A stretch of DNA of 62,616 nucleotides, filler included, from Dugesia japonica (taxonomy: Eukaryota): the NCBI GenBank assembly GCA_001938525.1. It is 5 parts of 5 records of this genome, joined end to end, with 100 filler letters (N's around TTAATTAATTAA, not from the genome) between each part and the next. Parts side by side here need not be neighbours in the genome. Positions count along the whole stretch, not along the records: positions 1 to 16,772 come from MQRL01575081.1; 4 more parts are not named here. One strand, given 5' to 3'. The position numbers were made by a program, and so were the translations under genes. Under the pieces are notes generated by a model. It searched no databases, was not told the DNA's origin, and was given only the letters and a program-made list of their open reading frames with translations. This document shows positions 1 through 11,202 of the stretch, piece by piece. Each line of letters starts with the position of its first letter. Positions within the stretch are counted from its first letter, which is position 1.

Positions 1-630
1 TCACATATTCCTATGTAAAAAATATAATGTTACATATTCTACAAAAAAATGTAATTTAATACTTGATGACTTTAAAATTATTATTCACTTAATTTACAAG
101 TTTTGTCAATTAATGCAAAAATATTTCATAAGGCTTTTTAAAACAAAAAAAATATTTAATTCATCAAGATATTATTATTATGAATTATAAAATTTCATCA
201 TTAATTTCACAATTTCAATTTTAAGAATTTATTTTAAAATCCCTAGTAATAGTAGAATCGGAGCATTTTTGCTCTCCATTTTTTTATCGCATATTATAAT
301 AATATATTGCAAATTATATGAATATATATTTTAGATTATTTTTTTATATTTACAATCAAAAAAACAAGTCCAAGTATAGGGTTCATGAAGCATGGGTGCC
401 CTAATTCTACTATTACTAAAATAGCCTCTGTCAATCCTTAAAAAATGAAATTTCAACAATAAATTAATCTAATTACATAATTTGTGTGCAAAATAGTTTT
501 TCCAACTAAATGAACGAGGAAAAAACAACCTCTCTGAAATAATATTGCCTAATATGATGCCATTTTTAAATTCCCATTTAAATTCATTGTGATTAAGTTT
601 TATTACATCAATAATTCTGGTGGGAAAGGT

Positions 631-675
631 TTATGTGCAGAGATTGAACCCCACTATTCCTTTACTAATAATAAT

Positions 676-734
<59 letters not shown>

Positions 735-3700
735 NNNNNNNNNNNNNNNNNNNNNNNNNNNNNNNNNNNNNNNNNNNNNNNNNNNNNNNNNNNNNNNNNN
801 NNNNNNNNNNNNNNNNNNNNNNNNNNNNNNNNNNNNNNNNNNNNNNNNNNNNNNNNNNNNNNNNNNNNNNNNNNNNNNNNNNNNNNNNNNNNNNNNNNNN
901 NNNNNNNNNNNNNNNNNNNNNNNNNNNNNNNNNNNNNNNNNNNNNNNNNNNNNNNNNNAATAATAAGAATAATGATTATTAACCGGATTTTATTAACAAT
1001 ATTGATCTCAGATTTATCAGATATTTTGCATTCTTCTAATGTTCTGTCATTGTTTAACAATTCATCTTGATAGGTTAATTTTATTTCATCTGAATTCAAT
1101 CCTATTTTATCTTGAATTTTATATTTTAAATCAATGATTTTCATGGTGTTCTGTATTTGAAAGGAAATTGTTTTCCCATCTATCGTTTTAACAAGAATTT
1201 GTATTTCAGTTCTAGAATCAATACTAAATTAAAAAAATTAATAATTNNNNNNNNNNNNNNNNNNNNNNNNNNNNNNNNNNNNNNNNNNNNNNNNNNNNNN
1301 NNNNNNNNNNNNNNNNNNNNNNNNNCTCATCATCCAATACATTAGATTGATAAACCAATTTCTGATCATCAGGATGCAATTTTAGTTGCTTTTGTATTTC
1401 CTTTTTTAAATCTTTTATTTTGCTATGTTTTTTTAGTTTTATTAAAAGTGTTCTCTTCTGCTTTGTTTTCACAAAGATTTTTATTCTAAATTTATTAATC
1501 AACTCAATGAAATTAATTATTTTGAAACCTTGATTTAGCTACAATAAATATCACGGATTCGTCCTTAATCTCATATTTCATCAAATCTTTGTTATTCTCA
1601 TTCAATATTATATCCTTATATTGTAAATCATATTTATGAAGATTCTTTCCTATTTTCTTTTCAGTTTCCCTTTTTATTTCAATAATATTCTTTGATTTTT
1701 CAACCTGAAATACTATCGTTAATCCTTCGATTATTAAGGCAATTATTTCCATTTCTTGTCTAAAATAATATAATAAATAATAATAAAACAGATAGATACT
1801 AGCGCACTGAATACCGCCCGCCAACGAAAAGATCTAGTAATTTTGGTGATCTAAGAAATTTACATTTTGATTGGTCGATAATTTGAAGATAATGTTTTTT
1901 NNNNNNNNNNNNNNNNNNNNNNNNNNNNNNNNNNNNNNNNTCGAATTTTCTATTTTTCCTTTTCTATTGTGTTCAAGTACTCTTGTATTATACTTATTTT
2001 TTTAGCATTTTCATGTGACATTGTTCACATACATAACATCTTGGTCTAGGTAACATAACCATGTTGAATTCCTTTTCTTTATTCTAATACCATGTCTAGA
2101 ATACTCAAATAATTAATATATGCCTGGAATTGTGACGTAATAGATTTCTTCATCGTAATCCTGGACGTTAGAATATCAGCCAAGTAATTTAAACAAAAAA
2201 TTAAATATCTTCGTGACACTAGTTATAATGACAAGTGTTATGACCCTTAAATTGGAGGAAGCAATTGTTTATCTTGATGATATACTGATATTTTCTAAAA
2301 CTGAGAAAGAGCATACAAAAAGATTGGAAAAAGTTTTTAATCAAATTAGAAATTCAGGTTTGAAATTAGGTTCTGATAAATGTATATATATGAAAAGTGA
2401 GATTCAGTTTCTGGACCATAACATTTTAAAAAAGGGTTTAAAAACTGATCCAGAAAAGATAAAACCAATTAAAGAATTTGAACAACCTAAGTGTTTAAAA
2501 AAACTTTGTGGATTTTTAGGGCTTACAAATTTTTACAAAAAATTTATTAATGACTATCCAAAACACTCGAGGATATTAGAAAGTTTGTGGAAACATTAAA
2601 AATAAATTAATTCGGTCAGATCAATGTAAACAAAGTTCTGAAGCTTTACAATGAGAATTAATGAAGGTTCCTATACTTATTTATCCTTATTTATATTTAT
2701 TTATATTTATTTAGATTTGTTCAAAAAATTCATACTAGATACAGATGCTAGCTTTGACACAAGTGGTGGAGTATTATCAAATTTAGAAGAACAAGGCAGT
2801 GAACGGGTTATAGCTTATGGATCAAAAGCTATGAGTAAGCATGATTTAGGTTATTGTATAACCAGAAAGAGCTTCTAGTAATATATTATTTTACGTAAGA
2901 TTATAAAGACTATTTATACAAAAAAAGATTTAAACTTCAAACTGATCACAAAACCATAACTTTAATGATTAATACAAAAAACCGATTACTCTACAATTCC
3001 AGACATGGATCAATTATTTAAGTAGTTTGGATATGATTATGGAATATAGAAAATGAAAATGTCATTTAAATGCTGACGCAATGTCGAGGAATAACTGCGA
3101 AACATGTATTCATTGTAAAATGAATCATGAAAATGCAAAAAAAGAGAAAATGAAAACTAAAGTCTTAGCAATTGAGCTTAAAACAAATGGTAATAAATGG
3201 CAAGAAAACTCTGAAGAAANNNNNNNNNNNNNNNNNNNNNNNNNNNNNNNNNNNNNNGAATTCAAAATTTAAGTTTTCAAATGATATCATAATGACAAAT
3301 AATAATAAAATTTGGATTCCTTTAGAATGCTGAAAAGTATTTGTAAGAAGTGAACACGAATCGCTATGTCATATAAGATCTCGAAAAATTGCAGCTCATA
3401 TAACAGAAAATTATGATTTGGAAGGCCAAGAAGAAATAGTAAAAGTAGTTACACAAAGTTGTAAAAATTGTAGATTAAGAAAAACACAAAAAACTAAAAC
3501 AAAATAAAAAATTATTAGTATTCCAGTTGATGACATCTTTGAAATCATTCATATTGATTTTTGTGGTCCTTTTAAGAAAACATTATATGGAAAACAATAA
3601 ATTTTAGCTATAATTGATAAATTCAGTAGATTTATATCTCTCAATGCAGTTGCACATCAAGATGAAAAAACCACTGAAAAATTTTCAAAAATAATTGGAT

Positions 3701-4399
3701 TTTGAAATATGGTGCACTGAGAATAATACAAAAAGATCGTGGAAAATCATTTGAAGCAAATCTATTCCAACAATTAGCTAAGGAATTTAATTGTGAAATC
3801 CAATAATCAAGTTCATATCATCATAGTAGTACTGGAATAAGTGAAAGACAATTTCGAACTATAAGAGATACAATTCATATTAGTTTACAGGATAAGAAAA
3901 TGCAGGACTGGGCAGAAATTTTACCAGAAATAGAATTTATGATGAACACCACAATTCAGAGAACGACAATATTTGGTTAGAAATAGACAAGGCCAGATGA
4001 TTGACAGGTCAGTTCACACCTCATAATATAAACAACAATAGGTGAGAAATTTCACGACTTAACTAAACTGCGATTTTTCACACCTTTGGCTTAAACTTTC
4101 ACACTCTAACTTTAAAAATNNNNNNNNNNNNNNNNNNNNNNNNNNNNNNNNNNNNNNNNNNNNNNNNNNNNNNNNNNNNNNNNNNNNNNNNNNNNNNNNN
4201 NNNNNNNNNNNNNNNNNNNNNNNNNNNNNNNNNNNNNNNNNNNNNNNNNNNNNNNNNNNNNNNNNNNNNNNNNNNNNNNNNNNNNNNNNNNNNNNNNNNN
4301 NNNNNNNNNNNNNNNNNNNNNNNNNNNNNNNNNNNNNNNNNNNNNNNNNNNNNNNNNNNNNNNNNNNNNNNNNNNNNNNNNNNNNNNNNNNNNNNNNNN

Positions 4400-4446
<47 letters not shown>

Positions 4447-5965
4447 CATTATTATTATTACTATTTTACTAATTAAAATAAAAATTTAATAAATAAAAGT
4501 CAAGTGATAGGAAAAATTTATTACAATCATAATCCAAAAAATACATTTCATTGTTTAATAGGCTTCATACTTCTTTAACAATCATATCACAGCAATGGAA
4601 TTAGTTGACATTGAAAAAAAACAACAATTATCATTTATTTTAAAATTTAACTTAATTATTAATTATATAATAACCATAAGCCATACTGTCATTTTTATTC
4701 TTCCAGAATCGCTTATCGTCCGTGCATGATAACGCGCTTTTCTGAGTTTCTACCGTATAAATCTGATGATTTATTGACCCGAAGGTGCTTTGATTTACTC
4801 TCTTTACTTCTGCTCCAATATATACGTCCAGATAGTTATCATGACGAATATCAATTTGTTTCAAACCGATTCCTTTAGCCTTCATTGTTGTACTGCCATC
4901 TTCCTTCTTCATGCTATGGCATTTGAGTCTTAAAAATACTCATTCAAGAAAATTTTCTTCCTAACACTCATCTGTAAATAGCCCAATCTTGTTGGCCACT
5001 TCACTCGAGTACAGAGGATGATCCATGGGATAATTACTTGTATCCAGCAGACCGTCAGATTTCACTTCTCTTAAGAGCATATCTTTGTTCACTCCGGTAC
5101 ATGTCAAGTAAAACCTATCTGTGTCACCTACAATAATATCAATTTTACAGCAATATTGATTTGGATATTTTTCCAACTCTTCATACTGTAACTTGTACAT
5201 GCGTAACTTGCTAAGATCGATCACCATCTGTCCAATGTAACTTGGCATATTTAGCTTTTTTGGCTTACAGCTTTTAATTCCTCTGCTATATCCATAGTCT
5301 TTTTGAATGTCGCTTTGCTCGTATATGTAACAAATTTCTTTTCATTATTGAAGAGTCGAAGATTCATGCGCTTCTTTAAATTTTCAACCGTCTTACCGTA
5401 CAAAGCATTATTCAGATGTAGCTCTTCTCGCGTTTATGTAATTCGCAAAAATTTCCGTCTGTTTAAATTTAATTATCCTATGTACTGCCGTAACATGAGC
5501 ACTTAGTTTAATATCTAACTCTAAAAATCGCCACTAGATAACATATTAGCTTTTCGGCTCATGTGTTAGCAGTAACGTTTTCACCTTTCATTCTGGCGGG
5601 TATTTATGCTCTGGCGTTAAAGGTAATTTATCAAACCAATCATGATGTTCGATATGTATATCCAGATCAACTTCCAACAAGTATCCAATTTCATTGTCAC
5701 ATCTTGATAATAATAACGTCTGATATTCTTCTTCCAACTGATATTCCGCTATAAACTCAAAGTCTATATGGTAAAGGCTGTGTTAAGATCTAACCATATA
5801 GATTATTTATATCGATATATAGCAGTGAGGTATTCTCATCTGTCAAAACGTAATGTGTATTTACAAATGTCATGCCACCTCTAATTCCTGATTCAAATAA
5901 CCTATGCATTTCCGGATCCTGTAGTAATTTTAATAGCCTATCCATTGTTTTGTTTATAATTTCAC

Positions 5966-6030
<65 letters not shown>

Positions 6031-9000
6031 NNNNNNNNNNNNNNNNNNNNNNNNNNNNNNNNNNNNNNNNNNNNNNNNNNATAATAATAATAATAATAAT
6101 AATTTCATATGGTTAATAAATAATATTTAAGGCTCATCATATTTTCATTGAAAAATTTTTAAGTTAGAGTGTGAAAGTTTAAGCCAAAGGTGTGAAAAAT
6201 CGCAGTTTAGATAAGTCGTGAAATTTCACACCTATTGTTGTTTATATTATGAGGTGTGAACTGACCTGTCAATAATTTTGTCGTGTCCCTGCCTAACAAC
6301 CTACTAGCGACGAATTTTTCTCCAGCTGAAAAAAAGTTACTCAAAAAATGAATTGATTGGAATGATAAAAAAAATTTAAATGAAAGAAATCTAAAGCGTA
6401 AAAGAATAATAAACAATTTAAATAACTATGAAAATTCCAAAAATTTCGAAAAGAATAATACAAATAGAAAATTTAATATTGGTGACGAAGTTTTAATTAA
6501 AAGAGAAAGTCCACATAAAAATGAAAACCGATATGAAAGACAAATAATAATCATAGAGAAAATATATGATAGGAATTTTAAATTAGAACGTACTAATGGT
6601 AAAAAAAATAATGAGAAATATAGATTGGCTAAAATACTTTAAAAACGGGGAATGTGCGATATGACTAATAATATAATATTTCACATTGACCTTTATATAA
6701 GTAAATCGACATATGTATGTTATAATAGGTGAATGCATGATTGAATGTTTGAATGTGTGTATGATTTTAGGGGTTAGGCATCATGCTTAACTGATTCCTC
6801 AAAAGCTATATATATATTTGTTACAATGCCATTTTGCGTTTAGAATATATATTTTATGCTTAATTCGTTTTCCAAGTCTAAAAATATATACAATACATAG
6901 TTAGAGATATGGGATATCTGAACAAGAATTCGAATTGTAGAATAGCACAAAACCAAATATCTATTCTTTACATTTGTACTTAATTGCGTCATCGGCCGAA
7001 CTTTATCTAATTAGTTGGTGAGAGCGTTGAGCCAGTGCTACCCAAATACTTATTCATTCAAAATTAACTTATTCACCTGTATTCGATAGCCCAAATTATT
7101 GATTTATTTGATATTCCATATTCATCGAATGTTTTTTCGTTCTCCAATATTTTATCTTCATAAATTANTATTTGCTTATCAACATTTATTCCTTTTTCAT
7201 ATTGAATTGCCTTTCGAAAATCTCCAATTTTTTGTGTTTTTAGAACAATAAGTTGAACAACACTTCCATCAATTATTTTCACGAATAATTCTATTCCTTC
7301 ATTTCTAATTATATTTAATTAATTTCTAATTATATTTAATAAATTAAAACAAACATTAAAACATCAATTGTTGAATATTCTCTAATCAATTCGTATTGAC
7401 NNNNNNNNNNNNNNNNNNNNNNNNNNNNNNNNNNNNNNNNNNNNNNNNNNNNNNNNNNNNNNNNNNNNNNNNNNNNNNNNNNNNNNNNNNNNNNNNNNNN
7501 NNNNNNNNNNNNNNNNNNNNNNNNNNNNNNNNNNNNNNNNNNNNNNNNNNNNNNNNNNNNNNNNNNNNNNNNNNNNNNNNNNNNNNNNNNNNNNNNNNAA
7601 ATTATTGATTAATTACAAATATGTGAAAAATATTGATCACAGATCCATTACATATTTGATAATCAGATAAATGTTTGTCATCATCCAATATTTTATATTG
7701 TTCATCATAAAAATGTGATTGTGATGAATATTTCTGCGTTGATTTCTCATCGATTATTTTTTTCCTAGAATAATGAAATAATCGAAATACAGATCGATAC
7801 AATCTAAATTCTGATTACTCAGTTAATTCTTCAGTTTTCATTGGATCAGTTGATTGGTTCATTATTTCATTTTTATAAACTAATTCGTATTCATTTTCGT
7901 TCAGTTTTGTTTTTTTATTTATTTCAGATTTGATATGTTTTATCGGAAATAATTTATTAATACATAAACTAAATAATTCTTTTTCTGATTTTCTGACGAA
8001 TATTTGTATTACATCACCATAATATCTGAAATAATAATTAAAAATAGCATTTTATTAATAAATTAATGATTGCTTCGATTTATCATCAACATTGATAATA
8101 GATTGATCAGATATTTGATATTGATCAATTGATTTGTCATTATTATCCAATATTTCACCTTTATAAATCAATATNNNNNNNNNNNNNNNNNNNNNNNNNN
8201 NNNNNNNNNNNNNNNNNNNNNNNNAAATCAATCTCTGATTGATCAGATATTTGATATTGATCAATTGATTTGTCATTATTATCCAATATTTCACCTTTAT
8301 AAATTAATATTAATTTATTAAGCTTTAACTGTTTCTTTCGTCCAATTTTCTTTTTTATATCTCTGATTTTATCAGATTTATCAGGATAAATTGGAAATAT
8401 TGATTCATCTGATGATGATTTAATAAATATTTCTATTACATCAGGATGTCTACATTAATAATTAATAATTAAATTTAATTGATAATCACAAACAAATCAA
8501 TATTGATCACAGAGTGATTACATAGTTTATAATAAGATAAATATTTGTCATTATCATCCAATATTTCATATTGTTCATCATCAAAATGTGATTGTAATGA
8601 ATATTTCTGTATTGATTTCTCATCGATTAATGTTTCCCTGCAATAATAAAATAATCGAAATACAGATCGATACAATCTGAATTATGATTACTCAGTTAAT
8701 TCTTCACTTGTAAATGTTTTCATTGGATCATTTGATTTGCTTATTTTTTCATTTTTATAAACTAATTTGTACTCATTTTCGTTCAGTTTTGTTTTTTCAT
8801 TTATTTTAGTTTTTATTTGTTTGATTAGAGATGATTTATTAAAACATAAACTAAATAGTTCTTTATCTGACTTTCTAACAAATAATTTTTTTACATAACT
8901 TCTACAATAATAAATTAAAAATCACATTTAATTAATAATATAATGATTGCCTCGTATCATAATCATAAATAATTACAGATTGATCAGTTATTTGATATTT

Positions 9001-11202
9001 ATCAAATGATTTGTCACCATCCAATATTTCACCTCCATAAATCAATATTAATTTATTAAAATTTTTTCGTTTTTTTTGTTTAATTTTGACTTTTATATCT
9101 CTGATTCTATCTGATTTATTAACATAAATTTGAAATATTGTTTCATCTGATGATGATTTAATAAATAATTCTATTACATCAGGATGTCTACATTAATAAT
9201 TAATAATTAAATTTAATTAATAATCACAAACAAATCAATATTGATCACAGATTGATCACATATTTGGTAATCAGATAAATATTTGTCATCATCCAATTTT
9301 TCATATTGTTCATCATAAAAATGTGATTGTGATGAACATTTCTGTATTGATTTTTCATCGATTAATGTTTGCCTGCAATAATAAAATAATCGAAATATAG
9401 ATCGATACAATCTAAATTCTGATTACTCAGTTAATTCTTCAGTTTTCATTGGATCATTTGATTGGTTCATTATTTCATTTTTATAAACTAATTCGTATTT
9501 ATTTTCGTTCAGTTTTGTTTTTTTATTTATTTCAGATTTGATATTTTTGATTGCAAATGATTTATTAATATGTAAGCTAAATAATTCTTTATTTGGCTTT
9601 CGAAAAAAAATTACTATTAAATCATCATCATATCGTCTACAATAATAATATTTAAAAATNACATTTAATTAATAATTTAATGATTGCCTCCAATTATCAT
9701 AATAGAAATCAATCTCTGATTGATCAGATATTTGATATTGATCAATTGATTTGTCATTTTTATCCAATATTTCACCTTTATAAATCAATATTAATTTTTT
9801 ACGCTTTAACTGTCTCTTCCCTCCAATTTTCTCTTTTATATCACTGATTTTATCAGATTTATCAGGATAAATTGGAAATATTGTTTCATCCGATAATGAT
9901 TTAATAAATATTTCTATTACATCACCAGAATGTCTATAATAAAAAATNNNNNNNNNNNNNNNNNNNNNNNNNNNNNNNNNNNNNNNNNNNNNNNNNNNAA
10001 TATTGATCTCAGATCCATCACGTATTTCGTATTCATCAATTGTTTTATTATCGATCATTTCTCTGCTTTGATAACTCAATTTTTGTAAATATTTCTTCAT
10101 TTGTGTTTCCGTTTCAATTTTAATTTTCATATCTCGAACTNNNNNNNNNNNNNNNNNNNNNNNNNNNNNNNNNNNNNNNNNNNNNNNNNNTCTCTACTTT
10201 TCTAATAAACATCGAAAAGTTTTTTCTATCTTTCATAACAAAAAATATTTTAATACTAAAAATAAAATTAATAATATTAAAATTCAATTAATAATTAATT
10301 AATTACGTTAATTTATCAACTGCATTGATGACAGATTTGTCACATATTTCATAATCCATCAATCTTTTCTCATCATTCAATTGTAAATCTTGATAAATCA
10401 ATTCTTGGTCTTTAGGAGCAATTTTTATTTGTTTTGCAATTTTGTTTTTCACATCAATAATTTTATCACAATTTTTTACATTAATTGAAAATTTTTTATT
10501 GGCAGTTTCAATAAACAATTCCATTTTATATCTGTTATTATTAATCAAATATAATCAATAATTAATTAATTATTACCTATTTATTAGTTTTTTAACATTA
10601 ATTATAGCCAAACTAATTATTCCGTAATCTTTTAATGTTTTATCATCATCCAATTCTTTATCATTATAAAATAATTGTTGCAAATCATAATCGATATCAA
10701 CCACTTTTGATATTTGAGATTTCAATTTGGAAACTTTATCAAACTCTTCAACTAGAAATGCAAAAATCTTCTCATTGACAGTTTCAACAAATATTCTCAT
10801 TCCTCCTCTAATATAAATAGAATCAATCAATAATAAATTATTCATTAGAAAATCAACCTCAGTCTAGTGACAACATTGATCATTGAAATATTATTTATTT
10901 GATAATCATTCAATCTCTTGTTATCTTCCAAAATTATTCCATCAAATAGTAAAATTTGTTCATTCACAGACAATCCTGTTTTCATTTCAATAGATTTTTT
11001 CACATCCATAATTATCATTTCATCATTTTCTAACAAAATAGCTACCAAATCATTATTGAAATTAACAATTAATTGAAATTTGTTTCTAAATTTAATTAAT
11101 TAATTCAATTCTTTCAGTAAAATAACCTCACTTTTTAAGCAAACTTTCTTCAATTTTTTCCTTCAAAATTTCTTCAAAAGAATTATCGAACATATTCGGC
11201 AT
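631..11202 (-). CDS. Spliced poly-ubiquitin-like protein gene, about 15 tandem divergent UBL domains
   Basis: Manual splicing of the minus strand gives one frame across every resolvable junction. Exons: 11202-11132 (MPNMFDNSF...), 11085-10858, 10807-10577, 10531-10307, 10255-~10000 (gap), 9933-9688, 9636-9427, 9372-9232, 9187-8951, 8901-8692, 8637-8494, 8449-8074 (gap), 8025-7819, 7764-~7618, an exon ending ~7355 (mostly in gap), 7304-7077, 1759-1529, 1485-~1326 (gap), 1223-984, terminal 664-631. Fully resolved internal exons are multiples of 3. Domains show ubiquitin-fold motifs (QILVKTIDGKTI, QQLFYNDKELDDDKTLKDYGI). Confidence 0.85.
666..735 (+). repeat. (TAA)n microsatellite in last intron, running into a gap
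   Basis: Direct observation. Confidence 0.95.
1950..2160 (-). pseudogene. Short inverted Gypsy RNase H C-terminal fragment
   Basis: Minus strand reads KSITSQFQAYINYLSILDMVLE*RKG, matching the ITSQFQTWINYLSS motif of other Gypsy copies in the window. Confidence 0.7.
3968..6305. mobile_element. Non-autonomous mini-Polinton/Maverick with TIRs and 6-bp TSD
   Basis: Near-identical inverted repeats ~4000-4119 and ~6155-6273, degenerate out to 3968/6305. Right end is CTACT (AGTAG). TSD AACGAC (3962-3967) / AGCGAC (6306-6311). Removing it restores integrase NTTIQRTTNFSPAE. Confidence 0.85.
4652..5940 (-). pseudogene. Protein-primed family B DNA polymerase, C-terminal half (Polinton type)
   Basis: Motifs GIRGGMTF, YIDINNLYG, NNALYGKTVEN, YIGQMVIDLSK, GDTD, KIGLFTDE, KAKGI, DDKRF; frameshifts and stops. 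Confidence 0.9.
7600..9933 (-). repeat. Three tandem copies of a ~740-bp, three-exon, two-UBL module within the poly-UBL gene
   Basis: Units start at 9933, 9187 and 8449 (spacing 746 and 738 bp). Exons and introns are similar between copies (e.g. repeated gtaatc...ttgtatcgatct intron). Confidence 0.9.
10858..11085 (-). CDS. UBL domain 1 exon; ends VTRLR, completed to RLRGG by the next exon
   Basis: CTG AG|gttgat...tattag|A GGA GGA ATG across the 50-nt intron 10857-10808. Confidence 0.85.

Follow-up and report, generated by a model that had tools for sequence, protein, structure and literature searches.

Positions 1-16772 of the window, which is the whole stretch of Dugesia japonica DNA analysed (62,616 nucleotides (nt), filler included), carry on the minus strand a colinear series of 18 ubiquitin-like open reading frame (ORF) pieces that runs from 11202 to about 984. 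We read this series, with somewhat more confidence than doubt, as a predicted nuclear gene with polyubiquitin ancestry in a eukaryote whose DNA is very rich in AT. Its product would be a long string of ubiquitin-like (UBL) domains that have diverged, each on a small exon of its own. About 1,200 residues of the product are resolved. It is most likely a poly-UBL scaffold or ubiquitin-chain mimic that cannot be processed into monomers, and the gene is possibly now decaying. The architecture is a variant of one that is already abundant in databases, though unstudied.

The DNA examined, positions 1-16772, has about 20% G+C and 17 runs of N, and its stop codons are the standard ones. In an ORF listing and a three-frame translation, open segments resembling ubiquitin follow one another on the minus strand from 11099 to 990; an in-house UBL profile detected 18 of them, which keep to this strand and to a consistent order, and gave no match elsewhere in the window. 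The junctions were read manually, base by base on the minus strand, and the coordinates were confirmed by script. Fourteen introns could be resolved in this way (46, 50, 45, 51, 51, 54, 44, 49, 54, 44, 48, 54, 50 and 43 nt on the minus strand), all 14 of which lie in phase 2, and each of the 13 resolved internal exons (228, 231, 225, 246, 210, 141, 237, 210, 144, 207, 228, 231 and 240 nt) has a length that is a multiple of three. GT-AG dinucleotides bound 11 of the 14 introns and GC-AG the remaining three, all of which follow exons of one type, termed A (AG/GCAATC). Retention of any of the introns leads to an in-frame stop within 1-6 codons. The G+C content is 16% in introns and 23% in exons. 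At the local composition the probability of a stop is 0.094 per codon, which gives each open run of 47-82 codons a probability of 1e-2 to 3e-4; not one of the 18 exon pieces, at about 20% GC, is interrupted by an in-frame stop. A first-pass annotation of this locus had proposed that the separate small ORFs splice into one frame through 43-54 nt introns, with phase 2 at every resolvable junction and the lengths of all resolved exons divisible by three, and this gene structure is correct at every visible junction.

The origin of the array can be read at the joint between exons 2 and 3. Spliced together, these exons encode ...VVTRLRGG/MRIFVETV..., in which the C-terminal tail of ubiquitin runs directly into Met-x-Ile-Phe-Val, the beginning of the next unit. 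Because RLRGG/M is formed across an intron, it validates this splice independently, and its presence establishes that the array descends from polyubiquitin. The intron falls in the codon that matches Arg74 of ubiquitin, and the split codon still specifies Arg at most other joints. Gly-Gly (GG) is kept at only this one of the 11 resolved joints; at the other ten the cleavage sites have been lost. The earlier contrast with polyubiquitins joined by GG accordingly describes these ten joints and not the first.

The units are recognisable as ubiquitin folds in spite of their divergence. Eight of the ten exon translations tested scored above the 25.4-bit gathering cut-off of PF00240 (29.6-54.2 bits); a B exon stayed below it at 24.0 bits, and a C exon gave no match. 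When a profile made from 13 exon translations (alignment A1) was compared with solved structures in the PDB, ubiquitin itself came out best, at about 61 bits per domain. The AlphaFold model of exon 2, the one exon modelled, has a predicted local distance difference test score (pLDDT) of 92.7 and presents strands and helix in ubiquitin order, in a beta-grasp; Foldseek matched it to ubiquitin chains with a template-modelling (TM) score of 0.92 and a root-mean-square deviation of 1.2 Å. Identity to ubiquitin is 25-37% across the units, and the older units are 19-42% identical to each other. Since units so far apart all score as UBL, long-term selection for the fold is indicated.

Between 9933 and about 7600, the central part of the array consists of three tandem copies of a three-exon unit of about 737 nt (exons A, B and C), spaced 735-743 nt apart. 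This triplication is recent and the youngest part of the array: DNA identity between the units is about 84-91%, and the A exons share 64-86% of their amino acids. High divergence between the domains, as first described, thus holds for most units but not for this central part. The colinear array of about 15 UBL units that had been proposed is also present, with the qualification that the B and C exons encode overlapping truncated UBL pieces and not halves of one clean domain. Insertions and deletions between the units involve only multiples of three in exons, and other lengths in introns. No stop is found in the three units, against 4.7-7.6 expected if the observed substitutions are placed at random, and simulated outcomes were stop-free in 0.06-0.7% of trials. 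The missing stops show that the reading frame has been protected, while the amino-acid sequence is weakly constrained. Altogether, constraint on the sequence is weak, and what is maintained is the fold and the open frame.

Translation is predicted to begin, on the minus strand, with the ATG at 11202. Exon 1 is required because exon 2 has no in-frame ATG upstream of its domain. The 23-residue leader that exon 1 encodes contains no hydrophobic stretch, and a secreted role is therefore not suggested. The other end is less well defined. Exon 19, the last resolved UBL, ends in NKIR without GG, and the true C-terminus lies past the gap at 735-958; a possible donor at 983 is followed downstream by this gap and an ATT microsatellite. 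The first-pass annotation had closed the gene with a terminal mini-exon at 664-631, which would require an intron of about 319 nt (983-665) spanning both the gap and the microsatellite. Given that the introns elsewhere measure 43-54 nt, this mini-exon and its intron are unsupported. The coordinates of all features are collected in Table 1.

Table 1. Exons of the predicted poly-UBL gene and transposon-derived features lying within it (positions in the window).
Feature	Position	Strand	Description
Exon 1	11132..11202	-	71 nt; ATG and 23-codon hydrophilic leader; phase-2 donor GTGAGG
Exon 2, UBL1	10858..11085	-	228 nt; PF00240 E=4.7e-12; spliced end is ubiquitin tail TRLRGG
Exon 3, UBL2	10577..10807	-	231 nt; starts GGMRIFVE; PF00240 E=1.3e-14
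Exon 4, UBL3	10307..10531	-	225 nt; PF00240 E=2.8e-13
Exon 5, UBL4	9999..10255	-	Split by gap 10141-10190; 3' end and donor within gap 9948-9998
Threefold three-exon tandem repeat	7599..9933	-	Repeat families D2, D4, D5
A exons	9933-9688, 9187-8951, 8449-8074	-	Full UBL; third copy across gap 8175-8224
B exons	9636-9427, 8901-8692, 8025-7819	-	UBL profile positions 1-54
C exons	9372-9232, 8637-8494, 7764-~7625	-	UBL profile positions 29-72
Exon 15	7355..7400	-	3' end of UBL exon; remainder in gap 7401-7598; donor GTTTGT, phase 2
Exon 16, UBL	7077..7304	-	228 nt; single N at 7168; donor GTGAAT; PF00240 E=7.6e-12
Interval between exons 16 and 17	1760..7076		5.3 kb of transposon debris
Exon 17, UBL	1529..1759	-	231 nt; PF00240 E=5.7e-07; acceptor in phase with exon 16 donor
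Exon 18, UBL start	1326..1485	-	First 53 codons; 3' end within gap 1247-1325
Exon 19, UBL	984..1223	-	240 nt; PF00240 E=2e-14; possible donor GTTAAT at 983
Terminal mini-exon (first-pass annotation)	631..664	-	10 codons and stop; unsupported
Ty3/gypsy pol	2159-3977 and 6352-6639	+	5'-truncated, frameshifted; Pfam RVT_1, RT_RNaseH, Integrase_H2C2
Reverse transcriptase	2159-2596	+	Pfam RVT_1
RNase H	2642-2875	+	Pfam RT_RNaseH
Integrase zinc domain	3334-3504	+	Pfam Integrase_H2C2
Probable integrase C-terminus	6352-6639	+	
Inverted repeat I5	3976-4117 / 6156-6297		142 nt, 92% identical; brackets element nested within gypsy-type integrase region
Degraded family-B polymerase-like ORFs	4655-5945	-	Motifs DINNLYG, GDTDRF, read by eye

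Several observations weigh against reading the locus as an intact gene of this kind. Five gaps strike coding exons, and two of these are out of frame at their literal length. The three GC-donor introns, at 9687, 8950 and 8073, are paralogous, and no alternative conserved GT is available at any of them; either GC is genuinely used as donor here or the model is weak at these points. At about 7625, exon C3 has AT where its GT donor stood, the next GT, 4 nt downstream, would shift the phase, and the sequence beyond this donor lies in the gap at 7401-7598. The pooled ratio of nonsynonymous to synonymous substitution (dN/dS) between the central units is 0.62-0.85, close to neutral, and reaches 1.0-3.6 in the C exons alone. 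The equivalents of ubiquitin L8, I44, H68 and K48 are only partly kept, which makes binding to standard ubiquitin receptors uncertain. Exons 16 and 17 are separated by 5.3 kb, 100 times the length of the other introns, the 3' end of the gene lies beyond the resolved sequence, and the neighbourhood is rich in repeats and without recognisable genes.

The first-pass annotation had named frame-breaking sequence in the N gaps as a point that would tell against the gene, and the gaps were examined with this in mind. The gap at 10141-10190, inside exon 5, is exactly 50 N, and at that literal length its flanks are out of frame by 1; the missing residues expected from the domain length are fewer than 50 nt would encode, and the N-terminal 21 and C-terminal 47 residues of this exon each align with the UBL profile. 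The single N at 7168 belongs to an nTA codon, for which a stop is impossible, and that at 9660 is intronic and leaves the coding sequence unaffected. The flanks of the gap at 8175-8224, in exon A3, are a 74-nt duplicate (8101-8174 and 8237-8310, 99% identical, family D6) and then diverge. The spacing of unit 3 is 873 nt and falls into the 735-743-nt period once the duplicate and the gap (136 nt) are subtracted; this gap is probably an unmerged contig overlap or a haplotype join rather than a place of hidden exons. Three further gaps (9948-9998, 7401-7598 and 1247-1325) each cover an exon end and the start of an intron. The estimated sizes of the first and the last fit one missing boundary each, and that of 7401-7598 fits one whole exon and the remainder of an intron. 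The gaps at 735-958, 1901-1940, 3220-3257, 4120-4399 and 6031-6080 do not touch the UBL exons and fall within the transposon-derived sequence or the questionable last intron. ATT/TAA microsatellites of about 22 copies each, at 666-734, 4400-4465 and 5966-6030, adjoin three of the gaps and are probably their cause.

The main rival explanation, which we consider possible although unlikely, holds that the locus is a decaying relic, that is, a former polyubiquitin-like gene which is now a neutral pseudogene broken by a transposon and by loss of splice sites. The altered C3 donor, the non-canonical GC donors of the three A-type introns, the dN/dS values and the gene-poor, repeat-rich surroundings all speak for it, and so do the degraded, nested transposons that separate exon 16 from exon 17 by 5.3 kb. 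In addition, exons and introns have diverged equally in two of the three comparisons between units, and neither the word-index protein search nor the metagenome-contig search returned a close homologue. Set against this are the 18 exon pieces at about 20% GC, in which not one in-frame stop has accumulated, and the recent units, which lack the stops that neutral drift would be expected to have introduced. The exon indels are all multiples of three, and usable splice dinucleotides are kept in 13 of the 14 resolvable introns. The transposon block, for its part, sits at a pre-existing intron site between exons that are in phase, and it need not break the frame.

That block also bears on a second alternative, which we regard as rather improbable: two or more genes may be present, one from 11202 to about 7077 and another from about 1759 to 984 (a shorter poly-UBL gene or a fragment), with transposon-filled intergenic DNA between them. 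An interval of 5.3 kb where other introns measure 43-54 nt would be explained in this way; an ATG lies in frame three codons into exon 17, and read-through past the exon 16 donor meets a TGA one codon beyond the exon end. However, the exon 16 donor at 7077 and the exon 17 acceptor at 1759 are both good and both in phase 2, and the spliced reading is open. Moreover, about 30 nt of AT-rich, intron-like sequence adjoin both the donor and the acceptor before the GC-richer ends of the transposon sequence are reached, which is expected of, and fits, the insertion of a transposon into a pre-existing short intron. The 5.3-kb interval may be a bloated intron or a break.

Within the interval, no pair of long terminal repeats was detected for the gypsy-type retroelement, and the best protein relative of its reverse-transcriptase fragment, 59% identical, is a metagenome fragment. 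The ORFs at 4655-5945 have no Pfam match; their motifs look by eye like those of a protein-primed family-B DNA polymerase, and the segment between the inverted repeats may be the remnant of a Maverick/Polinton-like or other terminal-inverted-repeat element.

The third alternative, a diversifying immune or decoy gene whose symmetric exons are skipped or shuffled into isoforms under positive selection, appears very unlikely. Symmetric phase-2 exons do make skipping or duplication neutral for the frame, the recent triplication shows a block of three exons copied in frame, and some exon pairs have a dN/dS close to or higher than 1; exons have diverged fourfold more than introns when unit 1 is set against unit 2 (16% versus 4%, p=6.5e-5). 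This excess is missing in the other two unit comparisons, the pooled dN/dS is below 1, and neither a signal peptide nor a link to any immune gene is seen. Tandem duplication of exons yields symmetric phases by itself, and these are no evidence of regulated skipping. Faster divergence of exons than of introns was also considered as a general signature of acceleration and was dropped, being seen in one of three unit pairs. The first-pass annotation had stated that any exon can be skipped or duplicated in frame; duplication has indeed happened, as the threefold unit demonstrates. The most elaborate form of the idea, in which skippable phase-2 cassette exons give variable poly-UBL isoforms under diversifying selection that act as decoys or mimics against pathogen deubiquitinases and ligases, the cleavable first UBL being a separate conjugatable modifier, we consider highly improbable.

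On the polyubiquitin-derived reading that we favour, the history is as follows. With an intron in the codon equivalent to Arg74, every ubiquitin-sized unit forms a separate exon flanked by phase 2 at either end. The array then grew, by exon duplications that preserved the frame and by subsequent divergence, to at least 12 full UBL domains and three pairs of truncated UBL pieces, and the latest duplication brought the three-exon block to three copies. Since all resolved joints except the first are without Gly-Gly, the product would not be cut into monomers and would persist as one beads-on-a-string chain. Such a chain, presumably cytosolic or nuclear, could serve as a non-hydrolysable mimic of linear ubiquitin chains or offer ubiquitin-binding proteins a multivalent scaffold. 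Cutting at RLRGG/M by deubiquitinases may still occur and would release a piece consisting of the leader and UBL1, with Arg72 and a free GG end. In ubiquitin, Arg72 and the GG end are the features read by the activating (E1) enzyme.

In the flanking DNA, the ORFs on either side gave nothing beyond a chance-level arrestin match when compared with Pfam, and neither Rfam nor tRNA scans returned a match. Around the gap at 15087-15136, two copies of a 166-nt sequence in direct orientation (14921-15086 and 15245-15410, 100% identical, 324 nt apart) point either to an assembly artefact or to a tandem duplication of very recent date. At 14435-14536 and 14543-14644, an inverted repeat of 102 nt, 91% identical, forms with its 6-nt spacer a long hairpin that could be a miniature inverted-repeat element. 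Finally, the G+C content of 16500-16772 is clearly above that of its surroundings; this segment includes a 31-nt tandem repeat of 2.4 copies at 16585-16657 and reaches the edge of the piece.

Database searches for relatives gave results at two levels. At the level of the individual gene, a word-index protein search with the exon 3 and exon 2 ORFs and a search of JGI metagenome contigs with back-translated exon A1 both returned no close relative, in line with the lineage-specific array first suggested. At the level of the architecture, an exon profile compared by HMMER with 1.84 billion representative proteins retrieved 30,014 matches at E<=1e-3 and 1,202 at E<=1e-30. We counted domain architectures in the best 150 library proteins (P0001-P0150). 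Split genes on unannotated contigs would enter this library only as single-exon ORFs and would fall below the top 150, a blind spot that the two word-index searches partly cover. Among the best 150 proteins, 102 have at least eight UBL domains. In 82 of these 102 the median inter-domain identity is below 50%, and 69 of the 82 diverged arrays have no RxRGG tail at all. This class (examples are P0012, P0021 and P0193) contains 8-22 or more UBLs per protein; the listed matches reach 2,934 residues, and one cluster member has 5,416 residues. The class occurs in diatoms (Cylindrotheca closterium CAJ1957214.1, 1420 amino acids (aa); Pseudo-nitzschia model Psemu1/23053, 1527 aa), in an anaerobic gut fungus (Pecoramyces ruminantium model Orpsp1_1/1175415, 892 aa) and in many other assemblies. 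Variable short polyubiquitins have also been described in algae (PMC6332867). To describe this locus as an undescribed system, as the first-pass annotation did, was therefore an overstatement, since database proteins include many long arrays of diverged UBLs that lack GG.

The GG-less proteins typically share 8-22 UBLs, a median inter-domain identity of 25-50% and joints that are usually without RxRGG. The present gene, with 12 or more complete domains that are 19-42% identical and with a single tail, fits this class, the likeness being one of architecture. Its exons are at best 31-47% identical to any class protein, which is ordinary for the superfamily, and no orthologue is among them. The gene of P0001 (locus L001), the one gene whose DNA was compared, differs in being an uninterrupted ORF and not one exon per domain. 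A fixed position for the retained GG across the class was ruled out, as it varies among the proteins that keep one or two GG tails. That so many GG-less diverged poly-UBLs exist elsewhere indicates that the architecture is viable. Such chains are widespread among eukaryote-like proteins, and the class is perhaps more interesting than this fragmentary locus; it puts to the ubiquitin field the question of whether cells use genetically encoded, uncleavable ubiquitin-chain mimics. We found in the literature no functional study of the GG-less class and no eukaryotic protein that carries ten or more diverged UBLs and has been characterised; what the literature yielded was ISG15, FAT10, OASL, USP7, bacterial polyUbl proteins of two to three domains, and annotation labels.

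These known systems each resemble the present gene in part. Bacterial polyUbl proteins likewise have tandem ubiquitin-like domains in one polypeptide, in their case two or three, and their operons also contain genes of the E1-, E2- and JAB-like kinds (Iyer, Burroughs and Aravind 2006, PMC1779556). In contrast, the flanks here are without E1-, E2- or JAB-like domains, and the gene is eukaryotic and split. In SDE2, an N-terminal UBL is cut off at a diglycine (PMC5131917). It shares with the predicted product an N-terminal GG-ending UBL placed before a larger non-ubiquitin protein, and provides a precedent for cutting only the first joint; however, SDE2 has a single UBL followed by unrelated domains, and cleavage at the joint here is predicted from RLRGG/M. 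ISG15 and FAT10 consist of UBLs head to tail without internal cleavage and form a chain-like ubiquitin mimic. The joining of UBLs without internal cleavage is common to them and to this array, but they have two domains and a C-terminal GG for conjugation, whereas the array has about 15 and the sole GG tail in its resolved part, which stops short of the C-terminus, comes after the first domain.

The closest comparison by origin is with the canonical polyubiquitins (UBI4/UBB/UBC/UBQ), which share with this gene the head-to-tail succession of ubiquitin folds of about 76 residues and, at its first joint, the RLRGG/M boundary. In canonical polyubiquitins the repeats are kept near-identical by concerted evolution, each ends in RLRGG followed by Met1, and deubiquitinases release the monomers; the coding regions are usually free of introns. 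Here, the repeats outside the triplication are 19-42% identical and not near-identical, RLRGG/M is found at the joint between exons 2 and 3 only while the other ten resolved joints are without GG, an intron of 43-54 nt lies at every resolvable unit boundary, and an N-terminal leader is present. If it is expressed, the gene would represent a route from polyubiquitin to a permanent chain of ubiquitin folds by way of movable in-frame exons, their multiplication and divergence, and the loss of cleavage sites.

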